Source of the DNA: Mytilus californianus
Taxonomy: Eukaryota
Assembly (NCBI RefSeq): GCF_021869535.1
Contig: NW_026262701.1
Coordinates: 8,432,001-8,496,000, forward strand
DNA length: 64,000 nt
Direction: 5' to 3'
Made by a program: the position numbers and the translations under genes. The notes below the pieces were generated by a model. It ran no database searches, was not told where the DNA came from, and worked only from the letters and a program-made list of their open reading frames with translations. Position 1 is the stretch's first letter. Each line of letters starts with the position of its first letter. Positions 5,466 through 62,955 of the stretch are shown here, piece after piece.

Positions 5466-5632
5466 TGATGGAAATATTAGCTATCTTGGTGTAATCAGGA
5501 GTGTACAGAATTTTACACCGGTGTTGAAAATATATACACCTTGAGGCGCAGCCGAAGGTCGTATGCATTTTCAACACCGGTGTAAAATTCCGTACACCCC
5601 TGACTGCACCGAAGTAACGAATTTATATCTTA
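5466..5632. repeat. Long palindrome (foldback) nested in the TIR element
   Basis: Arms GAATTTTACACCGGTGTTGAAAAT / ATTTTCAACACCGGTGTAAAATTC with further imperfect pairing outward; tip GAGGCGCAGCCGA. Confidence 0.85.
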
Positions 5633-6389
5633 TTTAGCGTTCGTTTACTTTTTTTTATTCCTTGGAACAAAATTGAAAAAAAATCTTATGGCCAACTTCC
5701 ACTACACATTTTTCAACACCGACGTTGCAATGCATTTTTCAAAGATTATCTATTTATTTTTTTTTTATTTGAGGAAAATTTGAAAATTTTATTATCTGGG
5801 ATATATTGGAGAAATTTTTTTTCTTCCTTTGGATTTGTTTTTGTTTTTTTTGGCAAAGAATTTCAAAATTTTATTTTTGTTTAAGCCAAAAAAAAATGTT
5901 ATTATTATTTTTTCCAATTTTGGCAAACATTTTTTTTTTTTGGAAATCTTGGCATATTTTTTTTATCCCCTGGTGAACTAGGGTGGGGTGTCATTTACAC
6001 CCGGGTAATTAACCAATCAGATAGCAAAATTCTTGCTTTATAAGAAATGATGTTTTATCGTTCTAGAAATGGAAATCAAGAACAATGTTCAATTGCTCCT
6101 ACTGTGAAGAGGAGTCTGATCAAGCGTATGCTATGCTTGGTCACACAGTAATAAAGCACCAGCATAGCTAAAAAATTGACAATGTATATTTGTGAGGTGA
6201 ACGCATATTATATACACATTTATTCTTTTATTTATAATTATATCAAAAGGATCGTATTGAAGCTTACAGATTATTTATCGTTGTTTATTGAATACATTCG
6301 ATAAGTTCCCGAGTTTATCATCAGCTCAGTAGTCAATACTTCGGTATTGACATGATTTATTTCAAACCTTTTTAAAATTATTTAATTCC

Positions 6390-8400: not shown

Positions 8401-10640
8401 AAAATTGAGAATGGAAACGGGGAATGCGTCAAAGAGACAACAACCCGACCAAATAGCAGGAAACAGCCCAAGGCCACCAATGGGTCTTCAACACAGCGAG
8501 AAAATCCCGCACCCGGAGGCGGGCTTCAGCTTGGCCCCTAAAAATAATGTATACTAGTTCAGCGAAAATGGATGTCACACTAAACTCCGAAACATATATA
8601 TGAACCAAAATTACAAAAAAACACACAAGACTAACAAAGGCCAGAGGTTTCTGACTTGGGACAGGCGCAAAAATGTCGCGGGGTAAAACATGTTTTGTGA
8701 GATCTCCCCCCTCCCCATCATACCTTAAGCTAATGTGGAATAAACAAACACATAGCAATACGCACTGTAAAATTCAGTTTAAAAGAAGTCCGAGTCCGAT
8801 GTTAGAATAGGTTACACAAGAAATTAAGCAAAATGACAATAATCAACATAGAATAACAAAATACTACTAGCAGTTATTGACATGCCAGCTCCAGACCTCA
8901 ATTAAACTGATTGAAAGATTATGTCTTCATCATATGAAACTCAAGCACAATCCCTCACGTTAGTGGTTTAGTATCATACAATCATAAAATATACGATATT
9001 ATATAATTATAGTATTAGGTCGATATGAGGTTAAATCGACATATGAGAAGCATATTGAATGAGGATAAAGTCCGAGGTCGATATGCTTCTCTAAGTCGAT
9101 ATAACATCGTATTGACCTCTACCAAAGTCTACAATTGTTATATCATTAATCAACAACTATTGCATGAACAATGTAAAATTTGGGATTTCTAGAATGTATT
9201 TTAGTAACATGCTGTATGCCCTGTGCAATATGATGTTTTTGACCTACGAAAAGCTAAACACAAAAGTATTGGTGTGCAAACTGAGTAAATACAAATGTAC
9301 ATGTGATTATGTTTTAACGAATCACAAATCCTTAAAAATATTCGATTAATGATATAAGAACATAACCCGTATCATGTCAACAACTGGTTTTAGAATAAAT
9401 GTGTTTATTTCCGATGCAAAGACCCTATGAGTGAATCAATATTAATTTTAACAAAACGCCATCTTTAATGACCTGCCAACAGTATCGTAACTATATCCCT
9501 TCTGAATAAGTCTGATTAAAGGTTTGGTTAGCTTTTGAGGTGAACGACTACATTTTTGTGCTTTATATAGAATATTAGCATGAAAGATGGGATGTGAAAT
9601 ACCTGAACGTATAAGATGTCTGCACGTTGATTTATATTTACGAATGATGTCCTTGTACTTATGATAAAATTTAGTAAATGTTTTTACAAGTTTGTGATAT
9701 CGAAAACCTTAGTGTAACAATTTTTCAGTAATACAGAGATTTCTTTCGTTAAAATCAAATACGTTGTTACACACACGAGCGGATCGAACAAGTTGAGATA
9801 TATAAACACCATAAGATGGTGCCAAGGGAACGTCACCATCTAAAAATGAATAATTAACAATAGGAAATGAAAATTCATCTCTTTTATCGTAAATTTTAGT
9901 ATTAAGCTTTCCGTCAAAGATATATATATCAAGATCCAGGAAAGGGCAGTGTTCATTGTTAATTAGCATTATTTAAAGTCAGTTCAGCAGGATAACTATC
10001 TTTAGTGTCCATAATGAAGTCGTCATTATTGAGAGCCAATATATCATCCATATATCTAAAAGTATTATTAAATGTTTGTATTAGATGTTGTTTCGATAGG
10101 TCTTTGCTAATTATAGTCATACATTGTAACTTGAAACAATGCAGAAACAGGTCCGCAATAAGTGGTGCACAGTTAGTCCCCATTGGAATTCCGATAACTT
10201 GACGATATACTGAATCTCCATAGCGAACAACAATGTTATCTAGTAAAAATTCAAGTGCAGTTATCGTATCAAAGCAGGTCCAATTGACATAGTTCTTTTG
10301 TTTGTTGTTGTTACTAAAAACGACATAAAAGAGTTTGAACATATATATTCGCCGATGATTCTGACTTTTTGAATGCCCATTTAATAAAGTATGTGATTTT
10401 TCTAAATGAAATTATGAGGCAAGTTGAATATAGGGTAGAAAAATCAAAACTTTGAACAGATTCGCAATCACCAATATGAGGATGCAATTTATCAAGTACT
10501 TCCAACGAATTTTTGACACTCCAAAAATAATTAATTCCAACGTTTTCAAAGGCCTTATTTGAACAATTTATTACCAGGTTTTTGATTGTACCAAGTGTAC
10601 TAGTAAGTAGAATAGACAGTTTAGTGGTGGAACAATAGCT
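8400..10640 (-). mobile_element. Penelope-like retroelement, 5'-truncated, frameshifted RT plus 3' tail, with a nested insertion at ~8995-9355
   Basis: ORFs 9959-10342 (YRQVIGIPMGTNCAPLIADLFL...FRYMDDIL) and 9709-9969 (FLDLDI...KIYDKRDEFSFPIVNY...SYGVYISQLVR). The tail matches the reverse complement of 30420-31030. Confidence 0.9.
8995..9145. repeat. Imperfect palindrome at the end of a ~360-bp insertion within the Penelope-like tail
   Basis: Arms AGGTCGATATGAGGTTAAATCGAC..GAGAAGCATAT and ATATGCTTCTCTAAGTCGATATAACATCGTATTGACCT; tip GAGGATAAAGTCCGAG. The uninterrupted copy at ~30420-30460 lacks this segment. Confidence 0.7.
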
Positions 10641-32100: not shown

Positions 32101-34170
32101 TGTTTAACACTAAGAAACCGCAAACTTAGAAACGAAACCTCAGCTTTTTTCTCCATTTTATATTCTGATGGAACAGGATGATTTTGGAAATGAATATTTT
32201 AGTCTGGTAAGAACTGAAAAACATATGTAACCTTGCCCAAAACATGATGAAAGTGAATATTTTGCCCAACAAATTGCAGGAAATGAAATTCTACAAAAGT
32301 AATGAAAATAAATAATTCAACCGACTGGGATCTTTTGAAAATGTTCTATACCGTTTGAGTGATGATACATACTAAATATTACTTTTTTATTTTTATTTCG
32401 GATTCACACTAAAAATAAAAATACTTTGCAGTTTTGTTCGAACACTTTAACATATAAATATAATCTGATAGGCAATTATAATCACTTTAGTTTACTGTAA
32501 TTTTCCCCTTAACTATTATAAGGCCCTCGGTGTCATAAATCACTTTCAAAACATAATATTTTTATACGAAGAATTTCGGTTACATGTTTCATATTTTAGA
32601 ATACACTTTATGTTATAATGTTGTTCTTAACAGCCATTTTCTCTGCTAACTGATGCGTAATACCATTTCTGATCGAAAAATAAAATACTAACAAATATTA
32701 ACTGAGGTAAACGTATGATCAATCCAAATATCTAGTTAACCTTATATTTATCTAGCTGTGCATTCGATCAAGCCGTTTGTAAAGACAGCACAGTAGTGAT
32801 AGACTCTTCATTCTCATGTTTACTGTCGCCAGCAACAGCTACGGTTAAACTACCGACAACCACAACCAAAACGACGACGACGAGTACCACAAAAATGTCT
32901 ACAACAGCACAAATCTTAATAACAGGAACAACGGATTTACCAACAACAACAACAAAGAAAACAACTTTACCGACGACACAGTTTTCTACCATAACTTCAA
33001 ACTTGACATCTGGCAATTTAATGACATCACAAATTCCGAGTAAGACATCGACTAAAAAAATCCAATCAACAACAATGACACATCTTTCAACGACTGTAAA
33101 ACCAAATTCCACGACACCAAAACCCTATTCCACGACACCAAAGCCACAACCAACGACTCCACAACCGAATTCAACGACATCAAAACCCAAACCAACGACT
33201 CCACAACCTAATTCAACGACATCAAAATCCCAACCAACGACTCAACAACCTAATTCAACAATACCAGAACCCCGCTCAACTACAGCACTGCCTTCTGGAT
33301 CATCAACACTCCAGCCTACACGTAGTCAGTTAGAACAAATGTTTTGTGACAATAAAAATATAATTGCATGTCATAATGATCCAAACAAAGTATGTGGTAC
33401 TGATGGCGTTACATATGATAACAAGTGAGTACCACTCATGTTATTTTATATCATTATACTTGAAGTTAAAATGCCTGATTTTGATTGATTAATACGAGGG
33501 AGAGACATTTTATTCTATCCCATGGCTCAGCTTCGCCTCGGTTGTTTTCTCGGGGTAACAATCTGCACTGTCACTCTCTCAGCTATGTGTTATTTGTATA
33601 GTATAAGAATCGTAGCTTTATAAAGTTTGTAAAAATATAACTCATTATCGTAATGATGAAAAACGAGAATTTGATAACGTGCAATAACACAATCATAATT
33701 AATGGTTATGTATGTAAATTAGAACTGCATTTTGTCCGATAATGCAATTATTTTAAAAATTCCACAATATAAAATAAGGAGATGTAGTGTGATTGCCAAT
33801 GAAACAACTATCCACCATAGTTGAAATGACGTAGATGTAAGCAATAATAGGTCATTGTACAACCTTCAACACTGAAAAAAAAACCATACCGTATAGTCAG
33901 CTATAAAAGGCACCGACATTAAAAAATATAAAACAATTCAAACGAGAAAAACTTAACGGCCTGTTTACGACTGTTTTAGGTTCTTTCATTCGCGTGTAAT
34001 CAAACCACGATGTTATTTGTGTCAGCAGTTTGTCATCCCTAGAAGTTTGTAACAATCATTATACCATTTACCCAATTCATATATGCTATTTTTTCAGTTG
34101 TGAGTTTGCCAAAGTACAGTGTGACAATTTCTACCTACAAATAAAAAACGCTGGAGATTGCAGTCCATAG
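29184..34170 (+). CDS. Gene B1: secreted Kazal - Thr/Pro-rich mucin linker - Kazal protein, ~301 aa, 4 coding exons
   Basis: Exons 29184-29211 (MYKFCIIFY), 31326-31461 (VLFGRTTA..CDVINGFNC..ICDTNGILYHN), 32756-33424 (FCAFDQAVC..T/P-rich..FCDNKNIIACHNDPNKVCGTDGVTYDN) and 34098-34170 (NCEFAKVQC..GDCSP*). Intron phases 1/2/2; six-Cys Kazal spacing twice; AATAAA at 34186. Confidence 0.88.
29380..31030 (+). mobile_element. Penelope-like retroelement (same family as 8400-10640) in B1 intron 1
   Basis: ORF 29571-29915 (YRQVFGIPMGTNCAPLIADLFLYCYE...FRYLDDIL) with frameshifts and an internal deletion; full 3' tail to ~31030. Confidence 0.9.
33100..33275 (+). repeat. Coding 21-nt (7-aa) tandem repeat in the B1 mucin linker
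   Basis: KPNSTTP KPYSTTP KPQPTTP QPNSTTS KPKPTTP QPNSTTS KSQPTTQ QPNSTIP EPRSTT. Confidence 0.85.
33500..33580. repeat. Degenerate palindrome in B1 intron 3
   Basis: GAGGGAGAGACA...TATCCC / GGGGTAACAA...TGTCACTCTCTC with tip CTCAGCTTCGCCTCGG (reverse complement CCGAGGCGAAGCTGAG). Confidence 0.55.
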
Positions 34171-35416: not shown

Positions 35417-38400
35417 ATGACTGTGTTAATCAATCTGTGTATTGGTAAGTATAGTATTTTAAATCACTTATCCCCTTTCCAGATTGATTAATATAGTTTA
35501 TTTTGTAAAAGTAGTTCGTCAGATTGTAAAGGTTTTCTGGTATTTCAAAGGATTTTCAACAGCGCTAGAGACCATGGTCTACGCCACATAGGTACTTGGA
35601 GATAGGACAATTTGTTTTACGTTTCCAAAATCCGTCACTAAAAAAAAAATTTTTTAATGAATTTTAGCCTCTCGCGTTTTTTCATGATATACTAAAATAA
35701 CATGTATTTATTTTTTACTATCAATTCCCTAGTTCACTATCCACAGCGGCCACTTATATATAAATATTATCAGTGGCCGCCGTGGCTAGTAAACTTAAAA
35801 TCGATAGTAAATACATAAAATATGTTATTTCTAGTATATATATGTATGTTGATATAATACAGGAAAACGGGAAAATAGTTTGAAAAAAAAAAAAAAAATA
35901 ACGGTTTTTGGAAAAAAAGGGGCTTAAAAAAAATTGTCCTGTCCCAAAGTACATATGGACTCTAAATCTATTGAATAGTAGATGACAGAAACACAAGAAC
36001 AAACAAGTGATAAACAATATTATATATATATTGCCGCATAAAAAAACGTGTATTGATTTAAAGCCAGATCAAAGTACTTAAACTGCCGAACATGTCGTCC
36101 AGCAGCCGATTGTACGAACGTGTCATTAGTCTAATGAGTCATTAAGTCATCATTAGCCTAATGCATCATAAAGGCTTAATGAAGACTTAATGACCAATTA
36201 GGCTAATGCCACTTTCGTACAACCGGGTGCTGCACTCTAATATCGGTTGCTGTGCTATAGATGATGTCGTAAGTAATGTCATAAACAACACAGGAATAAA
36301 ACAATGATACACAACACACAGAACAACAAATCTAATGCATTAAAGTATTGCTTCAAACTTTAAATTATCGAATTGAATCGATTGAATGAACAACAACAGT
36401 CTATCAATAATTCTATTGGGGAAAAGAGAAAGATTTGTTGGACAAAACCTCTATCAATAATCATATTGGGGAAAAGAGAAAGATTTGTTGGACAAAATAT
36501 AAACTTTAATGAATAATGTGTCCGTAAAAACTGGAAGCGAAATACCACTTTTAATCAAATTTATGCTGTTGGAATCAAAAATGCACAATAACAATTAAGT
36601 AAAAGTTTTGCAGAATTTATGATATCTTTATCCGTGCTGCATTTTTTTTTTTAATTCTCTAAATGAAAGATACGCTTGTAATACGAGAAAAATTAAAAAA
36701 TCCTAATTTATATGATGTGACAATACATTTGTGTATTTTAGAGACGAGTTGCAAGTATGATTTTTTTTTTAAGAAATGTATATTGATTTCTAAAGTTCCT
36801 CCTTTGTTTGAAATGCATCCGGTCAAAATCAACGGGTTCAGTTTATATATATTACTAGCAGGTCTGAATTAGCCATTTTCTAATTCAATCCACCATTTTC
36901 TACACAAATAAATGCATGTACCAAGTCAGGAATATGACAGTTGTTTTCCAATCGTTTGATTTGTTTGAGCTTTTGATTTTGCTATTTGATAAAGGACCTT
37001 CAAAAGTGATGATTTTCTAAAAATTAATTGACATTTCACAGTGATATCATACTTTAACTTTGTTTAAACCTGTTTATTTACTTTTGACTTTAATTATTTA
37101 TCCCTTGTAATTTTTTATTAACTGTGTATTTGCATTCAGGTGTCACAGGTCAAATTTATTCGTTCATTGTGTGTTAATTTACGTTTTTTGATTGAGTTAA
37201 GCCTACCAATTGATATTTTATAGTGTGTTTTTCTATGTTGTGATGTTATACTATTGTTTCAGAAAAGGGAGAAGGTTTGGTACCATTAAAACGTTTAATC
37301 CCTCTGCAAATGTTTGCACCTGTCCTAAGTCAGGAATCTGATTACAGTAGTTGTCGTCTGTTTATGTATTTCATACGTGTTTCTCGTTTCTCGTTTTTAT
37401 ATAGATTAGACCGTTGGTTTTTCCGTTTGAATGGTTTTACACTAGTAATTTTTTGGGAGCCCTTTATAGCTTGCTGTTCGGTGTGAGCCAATGCTCCGTG
37501 TTGAAGGCCGTACCTTGACCTATAATGGTTTACTTTTATAAATTGTAACTTGGATGGAGAGTTGTCTCATTGGCACTCATACCACATCTTCCTATATCTA
37601 TTTACGTTTTGAATTATCCTTGGAGTTCGGTATTTTTGTTATTTTACTTTTTTGTTGTATGCCAAAGTCTGTGAAAATGAAAACGTCAAACATTTTGAGC
37701 ACAAGTCTTTTTTCATAGCGGAATCATGATTAATTTTACCGGTCGGAAATATAGTTTTCAACTTGCAAAAGTGTACTTACTAGTGCAATATATAATTTAC
37801 GAAAGTGATGCACAAAACTTAAATAAATGCACAGTTTTACTTACTTCAAAATAACAAGTTTTGATCAAGTTTCCTAGTATCTTGATAAATTTTAAAAATA
37901 TTTAGCAACTCTATATCCCTCGTAGAAAAAACAAACAAATGTTACCTTTCGGTATTACATGGGATACAGTTTATTAAATCATAACGATTCACAATATCAT
38001 ATAGTAAACATTTCGTTATCAAAAGTTCTATTGTATAATAATAAAAGGGATATTGCACGACAAAGGTGAAAATTACCACTTCTCAATATGATAGTGTACT
38101 CTGGACAAATTGCACTAATATCTGTTAACCCTATACACAGGCACTTGTCTCTAAAGAAATAAAATCCTATATACCTCAAAGGTTTAAAGAAAAAAAAAAA
38201 GTGTACGTGACCCTAAATATAAAAAAAACCCACCGTTATGTATTACAGTGATGAGCGTGATCTGTGGAGTATCAGCAACAGTAGGGTTTGAGGATCTTTG
38301 TCGAGAGATAATACTACTTGACTGTAGTCAGCTGACGGTCGATACAGACGAGACAGTATGTGACTCTAATGGAAACTCCTATATAAATTTGTGAGTAGTT

Positions 38401-41400: not shown

Positions 41401-42540
41401 GGTTGAACACGTGGTGAGGTATACTGAGATGTGCGGGACGATGTATAATACCTTAAATTTTTCCGATTAGAAGTCAGTTATACATAGACAATAATAGTGC
41501 ATTGACTTGACATATCAACGATATAAGGATGAGGCTTAGAAACGGGGAAATGCGAGGCTCTGCCGAGCTTTTTCTCCGTTTCGGGCCGAATCCTTATATC
41601 GTTGATATGTCAAGTCAATGCACTATTATTGTCTTTATACTGCAATAAAAAAAATAAACATTTTCAATTGTTGTTTAATGTGTTAATGTTATTATTTAAT
41701 TTAAATATTGGGAAACTTCCCCCTTTTATAAAAAGGCCTCATATCATACAGGCAGAGAAATATACAACACAATGAAATGTACATTACCTGTTGAAACCCG
41801 CAATCGATGGTGAACGAATTTGTTTGAGAATGAACTAAAATATCAACAATAAGCATAAAACATAATGATTTATTATAGTTTGCAAACCAAAAATATTAAC
41901 AAGTGAAATATGTTCTTCTAAAAATTGCAAAAGAAATAAGTTTGAGTCGTTGTATACATTGGAAACAAGAACAGGTTGAATAGGTCGTATGAATAATTAA
42001 TTATAATTTCGGCAATTTCTATTTAAATATTCATGAGGAAAAGTGATATCAGGTCAGTGACTGTATATGACATAGAAATATACGGTCAACGCATTTTGAC
42101 TGCTCAAATAGAACGAGTGCAGTATAAATACATCTTAGCTGGTACTAACAATTGGAAAAACATATTATTGGTATTTCATTTGTCTGCCATTAGTGGGATA
42201 AACATTATCTTGCGTCACCACTAAACGCTTTGATGGAAATAAAGGTCCCATCGCCATAACTATGAAGTATAAAGTGCTTTCAAATAAAAAAAAAATAAAA
42301 ACGTTCGGTGATATACCAATGAAATAGAAAAGAAAGTTTCGTTAAATGAATAAATAAAAAGCTTCAGAAAAATCTGATATATATATATTGAATTAACATC
42401 ATAATAAATAAACTGGAAACGCTTTATTCATTTATTAATCTGAATCTAGCAATCTTACTTTTTTCCCTTTCAGTTGTGAATTTCAAAAGGCACAATGTGA
42501 CAACATCTGGCTATCAATAATACACACGGGTAGCTGTTGA
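35417..42540 (+). CDS. Gene B2: paralog of B1, secreted Kazal - short mucin linker - Kazal protein, ~179 aa, 4 coding exons
   Basis: Exons 35417-35444 (MTVLINLCI), 38249-38390 (VMSVICGVSA..CREIILLDC..VCDSNGNSYIN), 41021-41323 (FCAFDQARC..FCDNKDIVTCSYDPTKVCASNGVTHKN) and 42474-42540 (NCEFQKAQC..HTGSC*). Intron phases and the 28-nt first exon match B1. Confidence 0.88.
35717..35812. repeat. Imperfect palindrome in B2 intron 1
   Basis: TACTATC..CTATCCACAGCGGCCACT / AGTGGCCGCCGTGGCTAG..GATAGTA. Confidence 0.65.
36102..36233. mobile_element. Small foldback MITE-like element
   Basis: ~60-bp arms GATTGTACGAACGTGTCATTAGTCTAATGAGTCATTAAGTC / GACTTAATGACCAATTAGGCTAATGCCACTTTCGTACAACC. Confidence 0.7.
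36400..36497 (+). repeat. ~50-bp direct repeat x2
   Basis: TCTATCAATAAT..TATTGGGGAAAAGAGAAAGATTTGTTGGACAAAA occurs twice in tandem. Confidence 0.85.
38559..39231. mobile_element. MITE with GAGGGTGGTAAA TIRs and apparent 7-bp TSD (TTTAAAT), in B2 intron 2
   Basis: GAGGGTGGTAAAAGGG at 38559; CCCTTTACCACCCTC ending at 39231; TTTAAAT on both flanks; many subterminal CACG(A/G)AA repeats. Confidence 0.8.
39327..40160 (+). mobile_element. HINE/DINE-1-like non-autonomous Helentron element, apparently complete, in B2 intron 2
   Basis: 5' TTTTAGCTCAC..GTGAGCT, (CGTC)n microsatellite, 3' subTIR GTGAGCGA, hairpin AGGCTCTTGAGAGCCT, and CTTGTTTTT end. Confidence 0.8.
41484..42129 (+). mobile_element. Terminal-palindrome element, copy 1 (B2 intron 3)
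   Basis: 44-bp perfect arms AGACAATAATAGTGCATTGACTTGACATATCAACGATATAAGGA; near-identical copy at 61612-62225 with unrelated flanks; no TSD seen. Confidence 0.9.
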
Positions 42541-43399: not shown

Positions 43400-44330
43400 A
43401 AACATAATGAGATGTGGTATGATTGCCAATGAGACAACTATCCACCAAATGACGTGCATATTTAGTATTAGCAATTATAGGTCACCGTTCGGCCTTCAAC
43501 AAACAGAAAAAACCCATACCGTATAGTAAGCTATAAAAGGCCCCGTAATAAAAAAATGTGAAACAATTCAAACGAGAAAACTAACGGTATTATTTATAAC
43601 AATCCAATTTACGAACATCAAATATGATATACGTCATATATACAATCTGTCGATACCTGTATAATGCACAAGGTCATGTTTTTCTCTGACTGTTTATGCC
43701 GTCTTTACACTAAATCCATTGGATGCTGGGTGCGTACTGATTGATATTTTAGTCTTAGATGCAGGATTTTTTTTTATTAGTTGTTATTGGCTTTGAACTA
43801 GCTGTCAGTAACTGCGGGTACTCTCAGATCTGTACTTAAAGTCTTTTTGGTGCGGGGATGTGCAAGTACCCTGCCACGTCCACTCTGTGTTTTTGTTAGA
43901 ATTATTTCTATTTGTATCCATCTGAAGAGTTAAGCCTTTTTTAACTGATTTTTATAGTTTGTTCTTATGTTGTATTATTACATCACTGTTTCATGTTCGG
44001 GGAGGGTTGGCGCCTTCAGGCTAGTTTAACCCCTCCACATTCTATACGTGCCTGTCCCAAGTTAGGAGCATGTAGTTCAGTGGTTTTCGTTTGCTGCTGT
44101 GTATCATATTTGTTTTTCGTTCATTATTTTGTACATAAATTAGGCCGTTATTTTTCGCGTTTGAATTGTTTTACATTTGTCATTTCGGGGCCTTTTTTTA
44201 GCGGACTATGCGGTATGGGTTTTGCTCATTGTTGAAGGCCATACGGTGACCTTTAGTTGTTTATTTCTGTGTTAATTGGCTCTTGTGTAGAGTTGTCTCA
44301 TTGGCAATCATATCACATCTTCTAAATTTT
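43400..44330. repeat. Two opposed copies of the AGATGTGGTATGATTGCC interspersed repeat family
   Basis: Plus copy ~43400-43620; minus copy ~43640-44330 (reverse complement of 19185-19810). Confidence 0.65.
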
Positions 44331-45139
44331 ATATTTTTCAATATATGTCTAGTTATGTTATATTTTTTTTTAAAAATCAAAAAAAAATCAATGTTAGTAG
44401 CGATAATGTCTAAAGATTTTACTACAGTGTTGAATTGATAACCTTAAAAATAAGTTTATTAAATTGGTCAATGAGTTTACATCGATCGTATTTAAATTTA
44501 CGGGATCTTTAAACCACATCACCATAAAAAGAAGAATATGATATCCCGTTTTTAGAAGAATTTTACAGATACAGCAAAACTACCTAACCAACTCTTTGTA
44601 TCTTTGAAATGCTTTAGTAAAAGTTTAAATTAATTTGTGATAACGAAATCCCTGACTTAATTATTTACCAGTTATACATGAATTATGTTAATTGAAATCT
44701 AAAACGCGACTACAGACACCGTACAAAGGGGCCAACAGCACATCATCGTCTAAAAACAGAAAATTTCCAATACGGAACGAAAATCGTCCCTTTTGTCGTT
44801 TATTTTTGTATACAGTTTCCCGTGTGAAACTGAAATATCCAAATCTAGAAAATTACAATTATTGGCTTGCTGTCTGTATTAGATTCATTTACAGTAAGCT
44901 TTTTTGGGGAATTTTCCACAGTGAAATTAGAAAATTCTCAATTATTTAAAGCAAAAATGTCATCAGAGTAACGGTAAATGTTTTAAAATTTATCCATTAC
45001 TGATCTTTACTGAGTTTGGTCATAAACTGTGATTCATAATAATACAGGAACAAGTCTGCTTTTAAAAGCGTAATTGGTGCCCATAGGAATGCCTACAATC
45101 TGTCGATAACTTAATTGCCGACACGTACATGAATGTTGT

Positions 45140-47190
45140 CATGTAAAAAATTACAGATTTAATCAACTCGTCACAGAAGGGAAAATGTGGATATATATAT
45201 ATACGTGTGGTACAAAAATGCAACGGCTCATGTTCAGTACAAAACAATTACTAGTAAAGTGTTTAAGATCGAACAAGGAGTCGGTCAAGGACGTGTAATG
45301 TCTGCTTGGCTTTTTTCACTTTTTATTAACGATATGAATTACCAGCTTATAGAGTCTAAGAGTGGATTGATCATTGAACATTTACATATTCCGTGTGTTC
45401 TTTTAGCAGATGACACTACCTTGTTGAGTAGCTCAAATAACGGATTACAAATACTTTTAAGTATTGTTCACGAATATGTACAAAGATGGAGACTTAAATA
45501 TAATGCTTTGAAAAGTAAATTTTTACTTTTTAGTCCCAAAAAATATATGCAAAAACCTGATTACGTGTTTTCATTCGGTGATGCTACAATTTTGATGAAT
45601 GCTACAGTTACTTATGCTGGAACTCTGCTAGACTGTTTGAGAAGAACTTTCGGAAGGACAGATATTGCTTGTAAGAAATTAAAGCCAAATTTGCATTCGC
45701 TGTATAATATTGGTGTGAATCCAAATGGCATGTCACCGATCGCAAATACCGTTATATGGAAGAAGAGTTATCCTTCCTTGTGCACTTTATGCCTGTGAAC
45801 TTTGGGGACATTTAAATTCAACGGAGATTGGAATGTTAGAACAAGCACAGAGATATTTCACACGTTTTATCAAAGATCACCAAATGACTCTTGTATAAGT
45901 AATTTAGATCTTTGGACAATAGAAGGTCTCAATGACAAATTTAAGATTTTATTTCTTGGTAAATTATGTAGAGCGTCTGTTACAACTACTCATAAGCAAC
46001 TGTTTAATTTACGACTCAGTCAAATACTCTGTGGGGAATTGGCGAAATCATCATTAACTTATGATCTTATACAAACTTTAGCGAAATATAATATGTTATC
46101 ATTCCTTGAAAGTTATATCGAGGAGGCATATATTCCAGATAAAAGACTTTGGTCCAAAATAGTTAGTCAGTCAACAACAATTTTTGAAGAAAATAGATGG
46201 ATACTGTCTGTTCAACGTCGACCGGAACTCAACCGTTATTTTAAAATAATTTAATTTTGGATGTAACGCGTCTTCTGATTGGCTGACGTTGTTTTGTTTA
46301 TCAGCTCATAGACATAATTTTGTCATGTGACCGTGACGTCATCAACGTTTTTTCATGGTTTACTACGGTTTAAAATGGAATTTATAATTAAATTATAAGA
46401 AATGACTGTAATATTTTGTCTGTCTATTCGAAATAACATAAAAAATGTGGTGCACACTTTAAAATAACCCGCTACGCGGGTTATTCAGTGTGCATCACAT
46501 TTTTGATGTTATTTCTTCATAGACAGAAAAAATATTACAGTCATTCCTTAAATACATTCTTGTCTTACAGATCATAGACTTGTCAGACTTTCAGCTACGG
46601 ACCCTTTTTTCACAAGAGGTCTTTTACTTCTAATTCGTTTAGGATCCGTTGCCATTGAGAGTGGACAATGTACTATATGTAATCATTATACTGATGATAT
46701 TGTAAAACACTTAATTCTAAATTGTGAAAATACTATAATATTCTAAATGAAATGTTCAATGCGATAGTCGACTTATTGTCGGTACAAGATTCTGTAGGAC
46801 TATTTCAGCAGGACGAAGACGATATGCTTGTGACATTACTTGGTGGAGTAAATGATTATGTAAAACAACTGAACTCTGATGTGTGGAAACAATTGATGCT
46901 GTGCTTAGCGGGTCATATGTTGAAATTGTACAATCACTTCAAAAGTGTTTTATTTTACCATAATTTTAATTTTGGTCACTAAATCGGCAAAGTTGTATGT
47001 GCATTTGTTCTCTATTTTTTGTATTTATTATGTGTTGGACATTATAATCATCATGTAGTGTAATGACCTTATTGTCATATTGTGTTCATAATATTTTGTA
47101 TATAGCTTGTTAATTTCCTTTTGTATGTATTAACTATATGTCAGTCTTCATATATTGGAGTAAATAAAGACAATCAATCAATCAATCAAT
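45140..47190 (+). mobile_element. 5'-truncated non-LTR retrotransposon (LINE): RT, C-terminal CCHC knuckle, 3' UTR and (CAAT)n tail; frameshifted
   Basis: ORF 45187-45798 contains GVGQGRVMSAWLFSLFIND and LLADDTTL; LYACELWG lies in an adjacent frame; CTICNHYTDDIVKHLILNC at ~46670-46725; ends AATAAAGACAATCAATCAATCAATCAAT at ~47190. Confidence 0.9.
46249..46554 (-). mobile_element. Terminal-palindrome element (306 bp) inserted in the LINE ORF
   Basis: ~75-bp arms at 46390-46553 around CCCGCTACGCGGG. Removing 46249-46554 joins YFKI to HSCLTDH in frame. No clear TSD. Confidence 0.85.
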
Positions 47191-59200: not shown

Positions 59201-62200
59201 TTTAACGTGCACTGAGCTTGGCACTATCCTTACACGAGGCATCGGATTGAACGTCAACATTTCGATCGGCTGTGGCTGCGTATTTAACTATTTATACATC
59301 CCGCACTGCAAAGCAGACGCCCTATTGTAGCAAGGGTTTAACTGCCGGTACGGGAAAAGTCAAGGAATGACCATATTTATATACACATTGGAGATCTTTT
59401 GCAAATATAATGGTCTTTAAATGTTGAAAAAATGAATAGAAAGAAGCACAAAATATATAGATTTTGTAAAATGATGTACTAATTATATGTACTAACATAT
59501 TTGACTTTACATTTATGCATTTTAAATTGCCACTGCTGCTTACGATCTACTAGTTAAGTATTCAATTTAACACAGAAAAAGTCATTCTTGTTGGTTGTTA
59601 TCAAAACTCTCTTTTGCAATAAATCTTAAAACACTTCTGCAGGTGTCATTTCCACATTTTACAATAGTACGATCTATAGTGACTGCTGGGAGGTATACAA
59701 ACGAACCACGAAATGAATGGGTAACGGCTTACAGAGTTATATACAGTAAGGATGGAATAAACTGGGATAAATACAAAGATACCAAAGGCAAGATAATGGT
59801 GAGTAGAAATGTTAACCTTAGAAATGCATAAGTCGATTTTACTTTTATTTAAAATATTTGTCACATTTCTTTGCAGCTTGTTCGTGAAGTAAATACTAGT
59901 ATCTCTGATATTAATTGACATAAAATCTCACGAATACTAGTATACCGTGATGTACACAAAATAATATTTTCGAACTATAAATAATCTGCCTTACTTGGTT
60001 AGTTTGTTGGGATGCTGTCTCAATAACAAAATCGAGATGCAATTCATTGGGATTTTTATAAAAATTTGATCATTTTGATAATAATATCTATAAATTCAAT
60101 GTTATGATAAAAGGAGGCTTAAATTTTACAAAACGTTAAATAGAAATTTGCAGGATCAAAACTTGTGTAAATTAATAAGCTATAGACGTACAGAGAAAAG
60201 CGTGACACTTAACCTGGTCTACTTCCCTTGGAAAGAACAAAATTAAGGGAATATGGAAACTCTAGTTAAAAACTTCAAGGGAAAAATTATATATATTTCA
60301 AGTATGCATTTATTTTTTAAAAGATCTAAAAGATAAAAAGGACACTGGAAGAGTAACGTCAGATTATTAATATATTACAGGATTTTGTAGCCAACTTTGA
60401 CAAATCGACCCCGGTATCTACTGAACTTCCCATACCAGTTGTTGCTAGATATCTACGCCTACAACCAATATCATGGAGTCAGAAGATATCTCTCAGATTT
60501 GACGTGGTTGGATGTTTACTACCCACTGGTAATTTTTTATTTACAAATGATTTTGCATGTAACTTGTATTTTGTGACGTTATTCTGTTTTTATCGATTTT
60601 ACAAGCATTATGAGAAAAAAGAACAAAATAGAAATAAGATGTGATATGAGTGTCAATGAGAGAACTCTCCATCCAAATCACAATGTGTAAAAAGTAAACA
60701 GTTATGTAGGCCAAATGCATGTTTATGCGTAGGAACTATTTTGTTTTAAATATGCACTACTTTCCAGTATGTTCTTTTTTGACAGGGTCCGATTAGGTGG
60801 TGTCACATCTTACAAAGTCTATTCAAATTATTTTTGCAAAAAATTCCGCTCAGTCGGTGCTAGGGGCCGTCTTAAACGTGCAGTGAGGTGAGAGTGTGGA
60901 TACCCCATATCCTTTGTTTTTTTTCTATTATAATGGATAGTTTAATATTCCATATAAGAAACACACTTACTAGACAAACCTGAACTATTATCAAATTGTT
61001 ATTGGCCAAGTAAGAAGTTTAAAATGTTATTTCAGAGTTGCGTATCACACAGGAAGACACTGGGAAATTAAACTTGCTCATCCCGAACCAGTTAGATCTT
61101 AAATGTAGCTCCACTGGTCCATTCAGACCTAATATTGTGTGGTATAAAGATGGCGTTAGAATCTTGGACAGTTCTGGATTCACTCAGACAGTAAATACGT
61201 CGTGGCTAGATGACAAGATTGTGTCTACAGCTTCTCTCACAAGGGAGATAACTATGTACAATGATTCAGGACTGTATACTTGTGTCGACAGAACGAGTAA
61301 ACAAAACAAGTCTGTAACAGTGGAAGCTGGTAGGTTCTGGGAAGTCACAAAAAATATTTTTGTTCAGTAATGATTATAAAACAAGATGGCATACAAAGAG
61401 TATGACAGCGAACAGTTTTCAGATTACAACAACTTTGACATTTATCTATTACCATTTACTTAAATTCTCTACAAGTTGTTTATCAAATGTTATATTACAA
61501 AATTCCACCTTTTTTTGAAGTTTATTTTAAATCTGTAAAAATTACCATTCGCAAGAAAATTGGTTGATGAAGAAATATGGTTTTCGCAGTCAATTATGAT
61601 AATTCTAATATATAGACAATAATAGTGCATTGACTTGACATATCAACGATATAAGGATGAGGCTTAGAAACGGGGATATGCGAGGCTCTGCCGAGCTCAT
61701 TCCCCGTTTCGGGCCGAATCCTTATATCGTTGATATGTCAAGTCAATGCACTATTATTGTCTTTATACTGCAATCTAAAAAAAACACATTTTCAATTGTT
61801 GTTTAATATGTTAATGTTATTGTTTTATTTAAATATTGGGAAACTTCCCCCTTTTATAAAAAGGCCTCATATCATGCATGCGGAGAAATATACAACACAA
61901 TGAAATGTACATTACCTGTTGAAACCCGCAATCGATGGTGAACGAATTTGTTTGAGAATGAACTAAAATATCAACAATAAGCATAAAACATAATGATTTA
62001 TAGTTTGCAAACCAAAAATATTGCAAAAGAAATAAGTTTGAGTCGTTGTATACATTGGAAACAAGAACAGGTTGAATAGGTCGTATGAATAATTAATTAT
62101 AATTTCGGCAAATTCTATTTAAATATTCATGAGGAAAAGTGATATCAGGTCAGTGACTGTATATGATATAGAAATATACGGTCAACGCATTTTGACTGCT

Positions 62201-62955
62201 CAAATAGAACGAGTGCAGTATAAATTCAGTTATTGTTATTCCCTCATGCAAACTAGCCATGCCATGTGGTTTATCCTATTGTATCGGTTACCTGATTTTA
62301 TTTTAATTTAACTATAATAAAAACTATCATACTTACATGTAACCAACCATACTTCCTTCTAGTCCATACAAACTGTCGAAAACAGAACATGTAAAAACAC
62401 AGAAAACACACAAAGAGCTTATTTAAAAAGTGCTATTTTCATTCATATACAAAGTTGATGTTCCACGAAAAAGTCTGTTAATGATATATAGGTAAAACTA
62501 CATGCAACAATAAAAAATCTATGACCATAAGATATATGTTTAATGCAGAACTGTTTGTAAGCACTAATGATTATAACATACCATCTTAATTTCCATTTAC
62601 TGTTATATCTAACTGTATTCTCATTTCAATGCACATTTAAATTATTTTCTTTTGTTTTCAGCACAATTGAAAATGAGCCCAACCTTTAAACGAGTATGGG
62701 TTCTAAAGAATACAGAACTTACAGTTTCTTGTGAATATTCTGGTTCAAAGACCAAACGAATAACTTGGAAACACAACAGAAATAAAAATGTACAAAGTTT
62801 AGGTTTTCATGTGGTTACAAACACCAAATTTGAACACAGTGTTTCACACACTACATCGACAATAACAAAGGACACTACGACATTAGATAATGTAAACAAT
62901 ATTACATGTTCTGAAGGGGATCTGTCCAGGACTGTACAAGTGAGAGTGTTGTCAG
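56286..62955 (+). CDS. Gene D (probably partial): signal peptide - Ig - Ig - F5/8 type C (discoidin) - Ig - Ig ... protein
   Basis: Exons 56286-56337 (MMFWQGLFMILYISQTT), 57134-57415 (Ig1, DSGIYNC; GC donor), 57916-58203 (Ig2, WYKD..SSYYCEAG), 58638-58822, 59643-59798 and 60381-60528 (discoidin: SPYCARLN..GGWSP..QWIQV..EWVTAYRVIYSKDGINW..ARYLRLQPISWSQKISLRFDVVGC), 61036-61329 (Ig3, DSGLYTC) and 62662-62955 (Ig4). The last exon ends in a phase-1 GTGAG donor, so further exons are expected but were not found. Confidence 0.88.
56801..56895 (+). repeat. 36-bp minisatellite, ~2.5 copies, in gene D intron 1
   Basis: Unit CACCCGTACCAAACTAGAGCACCACCGATAGAGCGA. Confidence 0.85.
58950..59480 (-). repeat. 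SINE-like repeat (family of 50300-50870) in gene D intron
   Basis: TTGATTGAT..CAGTGGCGAATATTTCAT tail in antisense. ORF-track peptides at 59003-59260 and 50549-50776 align (PMPR..LS.G.VG.LLQGK..VPI) only because the DNA is homologous. Confidence 0.7.
61612..62225 (+). mobile_element. Terminal-palindrome element, copy 2 (gene D intron)
   Basis: Near-identical to 41484-42129 except for a ~30-bp internal deletion and a few substitutions. Confidence 0.9.

Follow-up and report, generated by a model that had tools for sequence, protein, structure and literature searches.

Within a 64,000-nucleotide stretch of Mytilus californianus DNA (referred to throughout as the window), several palindromes with unrelated arms carry very similar tips, each of which resembles a small, unusually stable hairpin of single-stranded DNA. 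The locus thus raises two questions: why palindromes that differ in their arms should end in the same way, and which enzyme such ends might serve. The window is AT-rich eukaryotic DNA (about 32% G+C), taken from an assembly of 1.65 Gb. All six of the tips listed in an initial annotation of the window are present in its sequence, at or near the places reported, and they are collected in Table 1 together with the elements that carry them. The elements are labelled mini-Cryptons, in keeping with the explanation favoured below. Table 1 also lists eight autonomous elements from other species, which are discussed further on.

Table 1. Tip-bearing elements of the window, and autonomous elements with the sense-strand tip of each
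Feature	Window position or species	Strand	Tip	Other features
Mini-Crypton A	5474..6009	+	5543-5555, GAGGCGCAGCCGA, enclosed by ACCTT...AAGGT; T-GA-GGC-GCA-GCC-GA-A	~536 bp, non-autonomous; palindrome 5476-5622, arms 5476-5537 and 5561-5622 (62 nt each, complementarity 82%); far end reads ...CCCGGGTAAT
Mini-Crypton D	9017..9357	+	9061-9075, GA-GGA-TAAAG-TCC-GA	palindrome ~9017-9118; left boundary approximate; repeat TTATATCATTAAT at 9138-9150, inverted copy 9345-9357
Decayed tip	33527..33539	-	GAGGCGAAGCTGA, GA-GGC-GAA-GCT-GA; one mismatch	decayed copy; right arm broken; intact copy of the family is L001
Mini-Crypton B1	41484..42127	+	41554-41566, GAGGCTCTGCCGA; GC-GA-GGC-TCT-GCC-GA-GC, with a second, outer GA-GGC...GCC-GA level	644 bp; palindrome 41484 to ~41636; repeat TTTATACTGCA at 41634-41644, inverted copy 42118-42128
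Mini-Crypton E	46244..46549	-	46468-46480, CCCGC-GTA-GCGGG, without G.A flanks	306 bp; palindrome ~46401-46549, the 5' end on the minus strand; repeat ATAATTTAATT, inverted copy at far end
Mini-Crypton B2	61612..62223	+	61682-61694, GAGGCTCTGCCGA	second copy of family B
L098	M. edulis		GA-CC-GAA-GG-GA	
L100	M. coruscus		GA-CC-GTA-GG-GA	
L096	M. edulis		GA-GCCC-GGA-GGGC-GA	
L101	Saccostrea cucullata (oyster)		GA-GGGCC-GTTA-GGCCC-GA	
L102	Patella caerulea (limpet)		GA-GGC-GATA-GCC-GA	
L104	Haliotis asinina (abalone)		GA-GGGGC-GTA-GCCCC-GA	
L105	Gigantopelta aegis (vent snail)		GA-GGGC-GAA-GCCC-GA	
L103	Dendronephthya gigantea (octocoral)		GA-GGCGC-GCA-GCGCC-GA	

The tip is far more common than its composition would predict. 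At up to one mismatch, GAGGCNNNGCCGA has five matches in the window, where 0.26 would be expected, and none of 100 shuffled sequences contained five or more. Enrichment across the genome, on which the initial annotation had made its interpretation depend, is clear, with 1586 occurrences of GAGGCNNNGCCGA against 195 of the reversed control. The two results together exclude chance. A second version of the tip, GA-GCCC-GNA-GGGC-GA (the type found in L096), occurs 738 times in the genome, and its control does not occur at all. The bare core GGCGNAGCC is not enriched (8193 occurrences in the genome against 31,280 of its reverse), but among the first 100 such cores on contig C1, 17 have GA..GA flanks, where about 0.3 would be expected; it is therefore the whole design that is selected. 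In 352 kb of sequence chosen without regard to the tip, a generalised form of the design was found 11 times and its reverse twice, and 148 kb of Helitron loci contained no match to it. One region, G000:C1:455173-557403, contains eleven GGCGNAGCC cores, all on the minus strand (ten GGCGCAGCC and one GGCGAAGCC). Nine of them lie at 455173-490720, spaced 2-8 kb apart, and two near 549859-557403 follow after a gap of 59 kb. They are probably a tandem array of some longer unit.

The arms of the palindromes are indeed unrelated in sequence, as had been stated: representatives of the different families share only about 30 nt around the tip in BLAST comparisons. The organisation of the elements is nevertheless the same. 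A survey of layout was made using the first 60 tip instances of the genome, with 1 kb on each side, and those of the window, giving 64 instances. All except three fall into five BLAST clusters, which hold at least eight palindrome families; L007 and L008 are non-palindromic, chance-like instances of the tip. The carriers consist of a terminal palindrome of 100-160 nt with a short repeat alongside it, and an inverted copy of this repeat at the opposite end. When the G.A strand is placed on top, the homology within every cluster stops 48-76 nt to the left of the tip, which is the outer edge of the left arm, while to the right it continues for 430-940 nt. The left terminus of the clustered elements reads TATA.... 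The repeat of 9-15 nt (TTATCCCCGG, TTTATACTGCA, TTATTAATTAACTAC or TTTAGAACA) follows directly after the palindrome, and its inverted copy forms the far terminus. As an example, Mini-Crypton A belongs to family c1b (copies L009-L011, L022, L054 and others), whose homology reaches about 69 nt to the left of the tip and about 455-493 nt to its right.

Read with the G.A strand uppermost, the carriers all have the palindrome at their 5' end, and Mini-Cryptons D and E of the window agree with this. In E the palindrome is at the right end on the plus strand, and the G-T-A loop reads on the minus strand, so that the palindrome is again 5' on the strand of the loop. This fixed orientation relative to the body of the element bears out the suggestion that the G.A motif is strand-specific. 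The proposal that the tips have converged has to be given up. Every carrier has the same layout and the same polarity, and the design is also present in autonomous Cryptons of molluscs and of an octocoral; the tip is an inherited hallmark of one superfamily, and not a series of independent inventions.

None of the six elements in the window has a recombinase gene inside it, and they are therefore non-autonomous. Elsewhere in the genome mini-Cryptons occur in small groups: three copies (L043-L045, G000:C1:46179078-46191958) lie 5.2-5.6 kb apart inside a repeated unit, and L005 comprises two copies in opposite orientation, 1.36 kb apart. The window also has two long palindromes, at 36097-36235 and 35731-35795, with arms of 59 nt and 28 nt and A/T-rich centres, that have no G.A/G-N-A cap, and the Crypton type thus does not cover all of the palindromes present here.

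The structure of the tip is best understood by comparison with the DNA mini-hairpin d(GCGNAGC)/d(GCGNNAGC), whose published rules are matched here by the loop, the closing pair and the last two pairs of the stem (PMC13037366, PMC3201870). The rules are strict. Among the 64 possible triloops only G-N-A works, and of longer loops GABA, GBAA and GTTA, with GATA among those tolerated; the last two stem pairs have to be GC..GC or CC..GG, CG or GG failing, and the closing pair is 5'-C..G-3' (PMC13037366), a pair whose effect on hairpin stability is documented (PMC3201870). The structure is far more stable as DNA than as RNA (PMC13037366). The stems found here, of which there are seven variants (CC, GGC, GCCC, GGGC, GGGCC, GGCGC and GGGGC), differ from each other and co-vary so that complementarity is kept; the initial annotation had proposed a check of covariation in the arms. 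In all seven the last two bases ahead of the loop are GC or CC, with 5'-C..G-3' as the invariant closing pair, and the loops of the autonomous elements and of the generalised design are GAA, GTA, GGA, GCA, GATA and GTTA. The mini-hairpin rules are followed by all 11 matches to the design in the 352 kb not selected for the tip, and by the GGC families.

There are exceptions to the loop rule. Family B has a TCT loop in both copies, at 41.5 kb and 61.7 kb, and the loop of element D is TAAAG, of 5 nt. In the first 100 genome matches to GAGGCNNNGCCGA the loops are GAA in 25, GCA in 21, GTA in 21, GGA in 1, TCT in 13 and others in 19, so that a hand count gives G-N-A loops in 68 of the 100. The GNA triloop is thus a shared feature of most tips, as had been claimed, but it is not obligatory: family B has been mobile recently with its TCT loop, from which it follows that G-N-A is dispensable.

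The flanking GA/GA pairs are mostly in a pyrimidine-GA-purine context, and in this they match the tandem sheared G.A pairs known as 'CGAG blocks' (PMC10085684). Most autonomous palindromes, and several of the mini families, have further GA/GA blocks lower in the stem. In the seven autonomous palindromes that were folded, GA/GA internal loops are found on the sense strand at one to three levels, always including the block at the tip, and T.C/T.C was never found on the sense strand. The sense strand is predicted to fold more stably than the antisense strand in 7/7 autonomous and 8/10 mini palindromes, the gap being small, at 2-8 kcal/mol. Oligonucleotides, phage origins and promoters are where mini-hairpins and CGAG blocks are known, and to cap the end of a eukaryotic transposon in conserved form, as the design does here, is not a role known for them.

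The most informative elements are those that carry genes. Long, gene-bearing copies attached to such palindromes, which the initial annotation had suggested seeking, do exist: the eight autonomous elements in Table 1 were picked from public assemblies by protein similarity alone, the pieces of recombinase ORF being searched singly and not as a joined spliced model. In all eight, a distance of 200-1300 nt separates the gene from the palindrome upstream of it, and the design is on the sense strand of the gene. The recombinase gene is flanked on one side by the palindrome-adjacent repeat and on the other by the inverted copy of this repeat. Least certain is the far end of L096, for which an exact or one-mismatch search was ambiguous; the best candidate, at about 10428-10443, has one mismatch and one indel. 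The ends of the elements outside Mytilus were defined from single copies. The repeat of the octocoral element is 22 nt long and starts with TTATATACCG, like the mussel repeat. The catalytic residues R-K-HxxR-H-Y are invariant in eight of these recombinases (R237, K275, H368, R371, H394, Y402), and DUF3504 and Phage_integrase domains are found across L095-L105, which identifies the autonomous relatives as tyrosine recombinase elements of the Crypton kind.

A further relative, L095, is located 9.43 Mb downstream of the window on the same contig. It has a terminal palindrome as well as TTATATACC, with GGTATATAA at the far end, and its ORFs, on the same strand, have DUF3504/QRICH1 domains; related Mytilus proteins have DUF3504 together with Phage_integrase. 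Its palindrome is an internally deleted version of that of L098/L100, and the tip has been lost. No second copy of the L095 recombinase was found by tblastn among the loci retrieved for the analysis. In the genome as a whole there are at least 150 scored DUF3504 matches, out of 580 candidates. In one case a GA-GCCC tip is 3.3 kb upstream of a DUF3504 match on the same strand (C1:138550860/138554165), the arrangement seen in L096. A second pair of coordinates, the only such link for the GA-GGC-GNA-GCC-GA tip (C1:73540167, with a DUF3504 match at C1:73541269), is on opposite strands and is ambiguous. In L097 a palindrome with a tip is 4.2 kb from a gene, and was kept apart from that gene. The autonomous element with the exact GGC stem is that of Patella.

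The miniature elements and the eight autonomous elements share layout, polarity, tip design and TTAT-type repeats, and Cryptons of this kind are the candidate partners of the families in the window. Every readable partner with this layout encodes a tyrosine recombinase, and of the two enzymes that had been named as candidates, a Crypton-like tyrosine recombinase and a HUH protein, the evidence points to the former. Two observations on the surroundings of the autonomous elements may be added. Just downstream of the octocoral Crypton there are two palindromes of about 1.2 kb (L103 8074-9236 and 9744-10951), and the flanks of this Crypton are alike (tagaatcatgtaa...), which places it inside a repeated or nested structure. 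The ENA contig with P0036 has two recombinase genes of identical length (408 aa), 2.65 kb apart; the same two small ORFs (81 and 76 aa) come before each of them, and the genes are therefore those of tandem Cryptons.

Empty sites were sought in public reads, and two were resolved. A contig from run X16 joins 41483 to 42128, and is therefore an allele without exactly the 644 bp of B1, with a 3-nt identity, ATA, at the joint. Contigs from X1 and X3 read into the element, and so the B1 insertion is polymorphic in the species. For element E, a joint between 46243 and 46550 is present in contigs of four runs and carries a 5-nt identity, AAATA. These contigs have many differing sites and a depth above that of unique sequence, and so represent paralogous copies without E. 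The surrounding stretch, 45177-46950, is moderately repeated, its contigs being 3-10x deeper than the unique flanks with about 4% of sites differing, and its other copies do not have the 306-bp element. The empty sites read ...tatac|atacat... and ...atttta|aaatac.... Both are precise, and identities of 3 and 5 nt agree with the published account of Cryptons, whose termini have short direct repeats (PMC3212892), rather than with a duplication of fixed length or the T|T target of Helentrons.

On the basis of these observations, we favour with moderate confidence the explanation that the palindromes are 5'-terminal hairpin modules of Cryptons and of their gene-less miniatures, moved by a Crypton-type tyrosine recombinase, and that the function of the tip is to fold the sense strand. 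In outline, an element would consist of a short A/T-rich stretch identical to the target (ATA or AAATA at the sites resolved), the 100-160-nt palindrome, a repeat of 9-22 nt starting TTAT or TTAA, the body, and the inverted copy of the repeat. In autonomous copies the body would hold the recombinase gene, on the same strand as the G.A motif. In the tip, a loop of the form G-N-A or G-N-N-A would sit on a GC or CC stem, with 5'-C..G-3' as the closing pair and tandem sheared G.A pairs as flanks, often with one or two more G.A/G.A blocks lower in the stem. The non-Watson-Crick features are all on one strand, and only that strand gains stability from them, so the tip most likely nucleates and locks the folding of the sense strand, into a hairpin or into one cruciform arm. 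Extrusion of the palindrome would bring the two short inverted repeats together, creating a palindromic core (for example ...GTATAAA|TTTATAC...) of the type used as a recombinase site, and strand exchange would then take place at the base of the hairpin, where element and target have a few A/T bases in common.

The sequence rules argue strongly that the sense DNA strand folds on itself, and from them we infer that it does so in vivo; the folded form would then be the substrate of the recombinase or of a complex containing it. A more specific proposal, which we make only tentatively, is that animal Cryptons transpose via a folded single strand: the recombinase would recognise the sense hairpin by its shape, to which the mini-hairpin cap and the sheared G.A blocks contribute, one strand would be exchanged with an A/T-rich target, and replication would resolve the product. 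If this were true, recombination as at integron attC sites or in the CTX phage would have its first counterpart in eukaryotes, and it would be explained why the ends of Cryptons were never defined.

Four other explanations have to be weighed against this one. An unlikely one is that the hairpin is an origin of second-strand synthesis on a single-stranded Crypton circle, where host primase or polymerase starts as at phage G4-type origins, with the recombinase acting only on the short inverted repeats. Such mini-hairpins are reported at G4 and ssiA origins and at N4 single-strand promoters (PMC13037366), strict polarity on a single strand would be compatible with such a role, and if the palindrome were looped out the two short repeats alone would make up a complete palindromic core site. 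However, the element begins on the left at the outer edge of its palindrome, where the crossover identity also lies, which puts the base of the palindrome itself at the recombination joint. Moreover, we know of no single-stranded intermediate of Cryptons.

Also unlikely is a role confined to duplex DNA, in which the palindrome would be a platform for binding recombinase multimers, and the GA/GA pairs and odd-length centre would supply only an orienting asymmetry, without folding. The difference in free energy between the strands is modest, and classical tyrosine recombinases do use duplex sites with an asymmetric spacer (PMC3212892). A protein that reads the duplex would be expected to conserve sequence and not pairing, whereas the seven stem variants co-vary and retain complementarity alone. 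The rules for loop and closing pair are relevant only to intrastrand DNA hairpins, and the asymmetry is always G.A/G.A on one strand, at up to three levels, and never T.C.

It is very unlikely that the palindrome functions at the level of RNA, in a transcribed leader of the recombinase gene, as a hairpin that has a regulatory role or is a source of small RNA. In 8/8 autonomous elements it precedes the gene and is on its sense strand, as would suit such a leader, and tandem G.A pairs are found in RNA too. Against this, the GATA and GTTA tetraloops are not GNRA, an RNA version of the mini-hairpin is markedly less stable than the DNA (PMC13037366), an Rfam scan of the window gave no match, the outer edge of the palindrome is the terminus of the element, and derivatives with no gene still have the module, in the same orientation to the end repeats.

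The elements can hardly be Helentrons/HINEs or Helitron2 rolling-circle elements driven by a HUH Rep/helicase, despite a layout resembling that of published HINEs (PMC4067079, PMC7492417) and at least 126 Helitron_like_N matches in the genome, because the tip and palindrome are absent from two full-length Rep/Hel elements (2596 and 2685 aa) and 30 Rep loci, the empty sites have 3-5-nt identities and are not T|T, the palindromes of HINEs have stems of 5-10 bp against 100-160 nt here, and the readable genes with this layout are those of tyrosine recombinases. The likeness is real: the elements here do have a 5' repeat, an inverted copy of it near the 3' end and a terminal palindrome, as Helentrons/HINEs and Helitron2 do, and the miniatures of these are abundant in bivalves. 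This layout is however also that of the Cryptons described here, and it does not separate the two. A Helentron/HINE identification had been adopted on the basis of layout, and was dropped in view of the Rep loci without tip, the sites that are not T|T, and the tyrosine recombinase partners. The HUH enzyme proposed as the second candidate is accordingly left with no link between the tips and Helitron Rep genes in these elements and loci. The two Rep/Hel loci (L091+L093, G000:C157:193000-212999, and L092+L094, G000:C143:53849500-53869499) each have a Helitron-type gene, of 2596 and 2685 codons respectively, that looks intact and encodes OTU or Herpes_teg_N protease, DUF6570, Rep and PIF1 domains; no element ends and no long palindrome were found at either.

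The Crypton-type explanation agrees with what is known of animal CryptonA (DUF3504-type) elements in most respects: the autonomous relatives encode a single tyrosine recombinase with a full catalytic set, there are no long terminal repeats, and the joints have short A/T-rich identities with precise empty sites. Published Cryptons are described as low-copy, with no terminal inverted repeats and only direct repeats of 4-6 bp (PMC3212892, PMC8969392, PMC13465315). In contrast, the elements described here have an asymmetric end, with a 100-160-nt palindrome and a strand-specific mini-hairpin cap, and inverted repeats of 9-22 nt, and their miniature copies number hundreds to thousands. No description of a palindrome or hairpin at the ends of Cryptons was found in literature to June 2026, of which our coverage was incomplete (PMC3212892, PMC8969392, PMC13465315).

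The closest parallel in logic is the attC site of integrons and its recombinase IntI, also a tyrosine recombinase, in which arms of unrelated sequence fold alike and non-canonical features on one strand determine the choice of strand (PMC2727003, PMC5027507). The attC sites differ in being bacterial, of 60-140 nt, and marked by extrahelical bases and an unpaired spacer and not by G.A blocks and a G-N-A cap. Nor are the recombinases closely related, and single-strand use is proven for attC, where for the Cryptons here we infer it. In the CTX phage, folding of attP(+) into a single-stranded hairpin creates a XerCD site, and integration takes place at a few identical bases. This system is bacterial as well; the phage relies on recombinases of its host, and a mini-hairpin cap is absent.

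Among the orders of eukaryotic DNA transposons, Cryptons are understood least, and reviews up to 2026 give them no defined ends and a mechanism that is only proposed. A DNA fold that is strand-specific and conserved in an octocoral, gastropods and bivalves, and is carried by elements still inserting in mussel populations, is a testable clue to how Cryptons move, and a concrete substrate for biochemistry. Cryptons are also the origin of conserved vertebrate genes, namely ZMYM2-4, QRICH1, KCTD1 and KIAA1958. In practice, Cryptons can be annotated by searching for the tip together with the layout, and so can the mini-Cryptons, which are very abundant and in bivalves are easily taken for MITEs or Helitron-like elements. 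Should the folded strand prove to be the true substrate, recombination of single strands by tyrosine recombinases would not be confined to bacteria.

It is worth adding that the window contains, at 43400-44400, an extremely high-copy repeat, with a summed contig word depth of about 10^6 in 4/4 runs against 10-60 for the unique flanks. Many of the joints in this repeat turn back or switch strand, and this suggests a very abundant element with an internal inverted structure.
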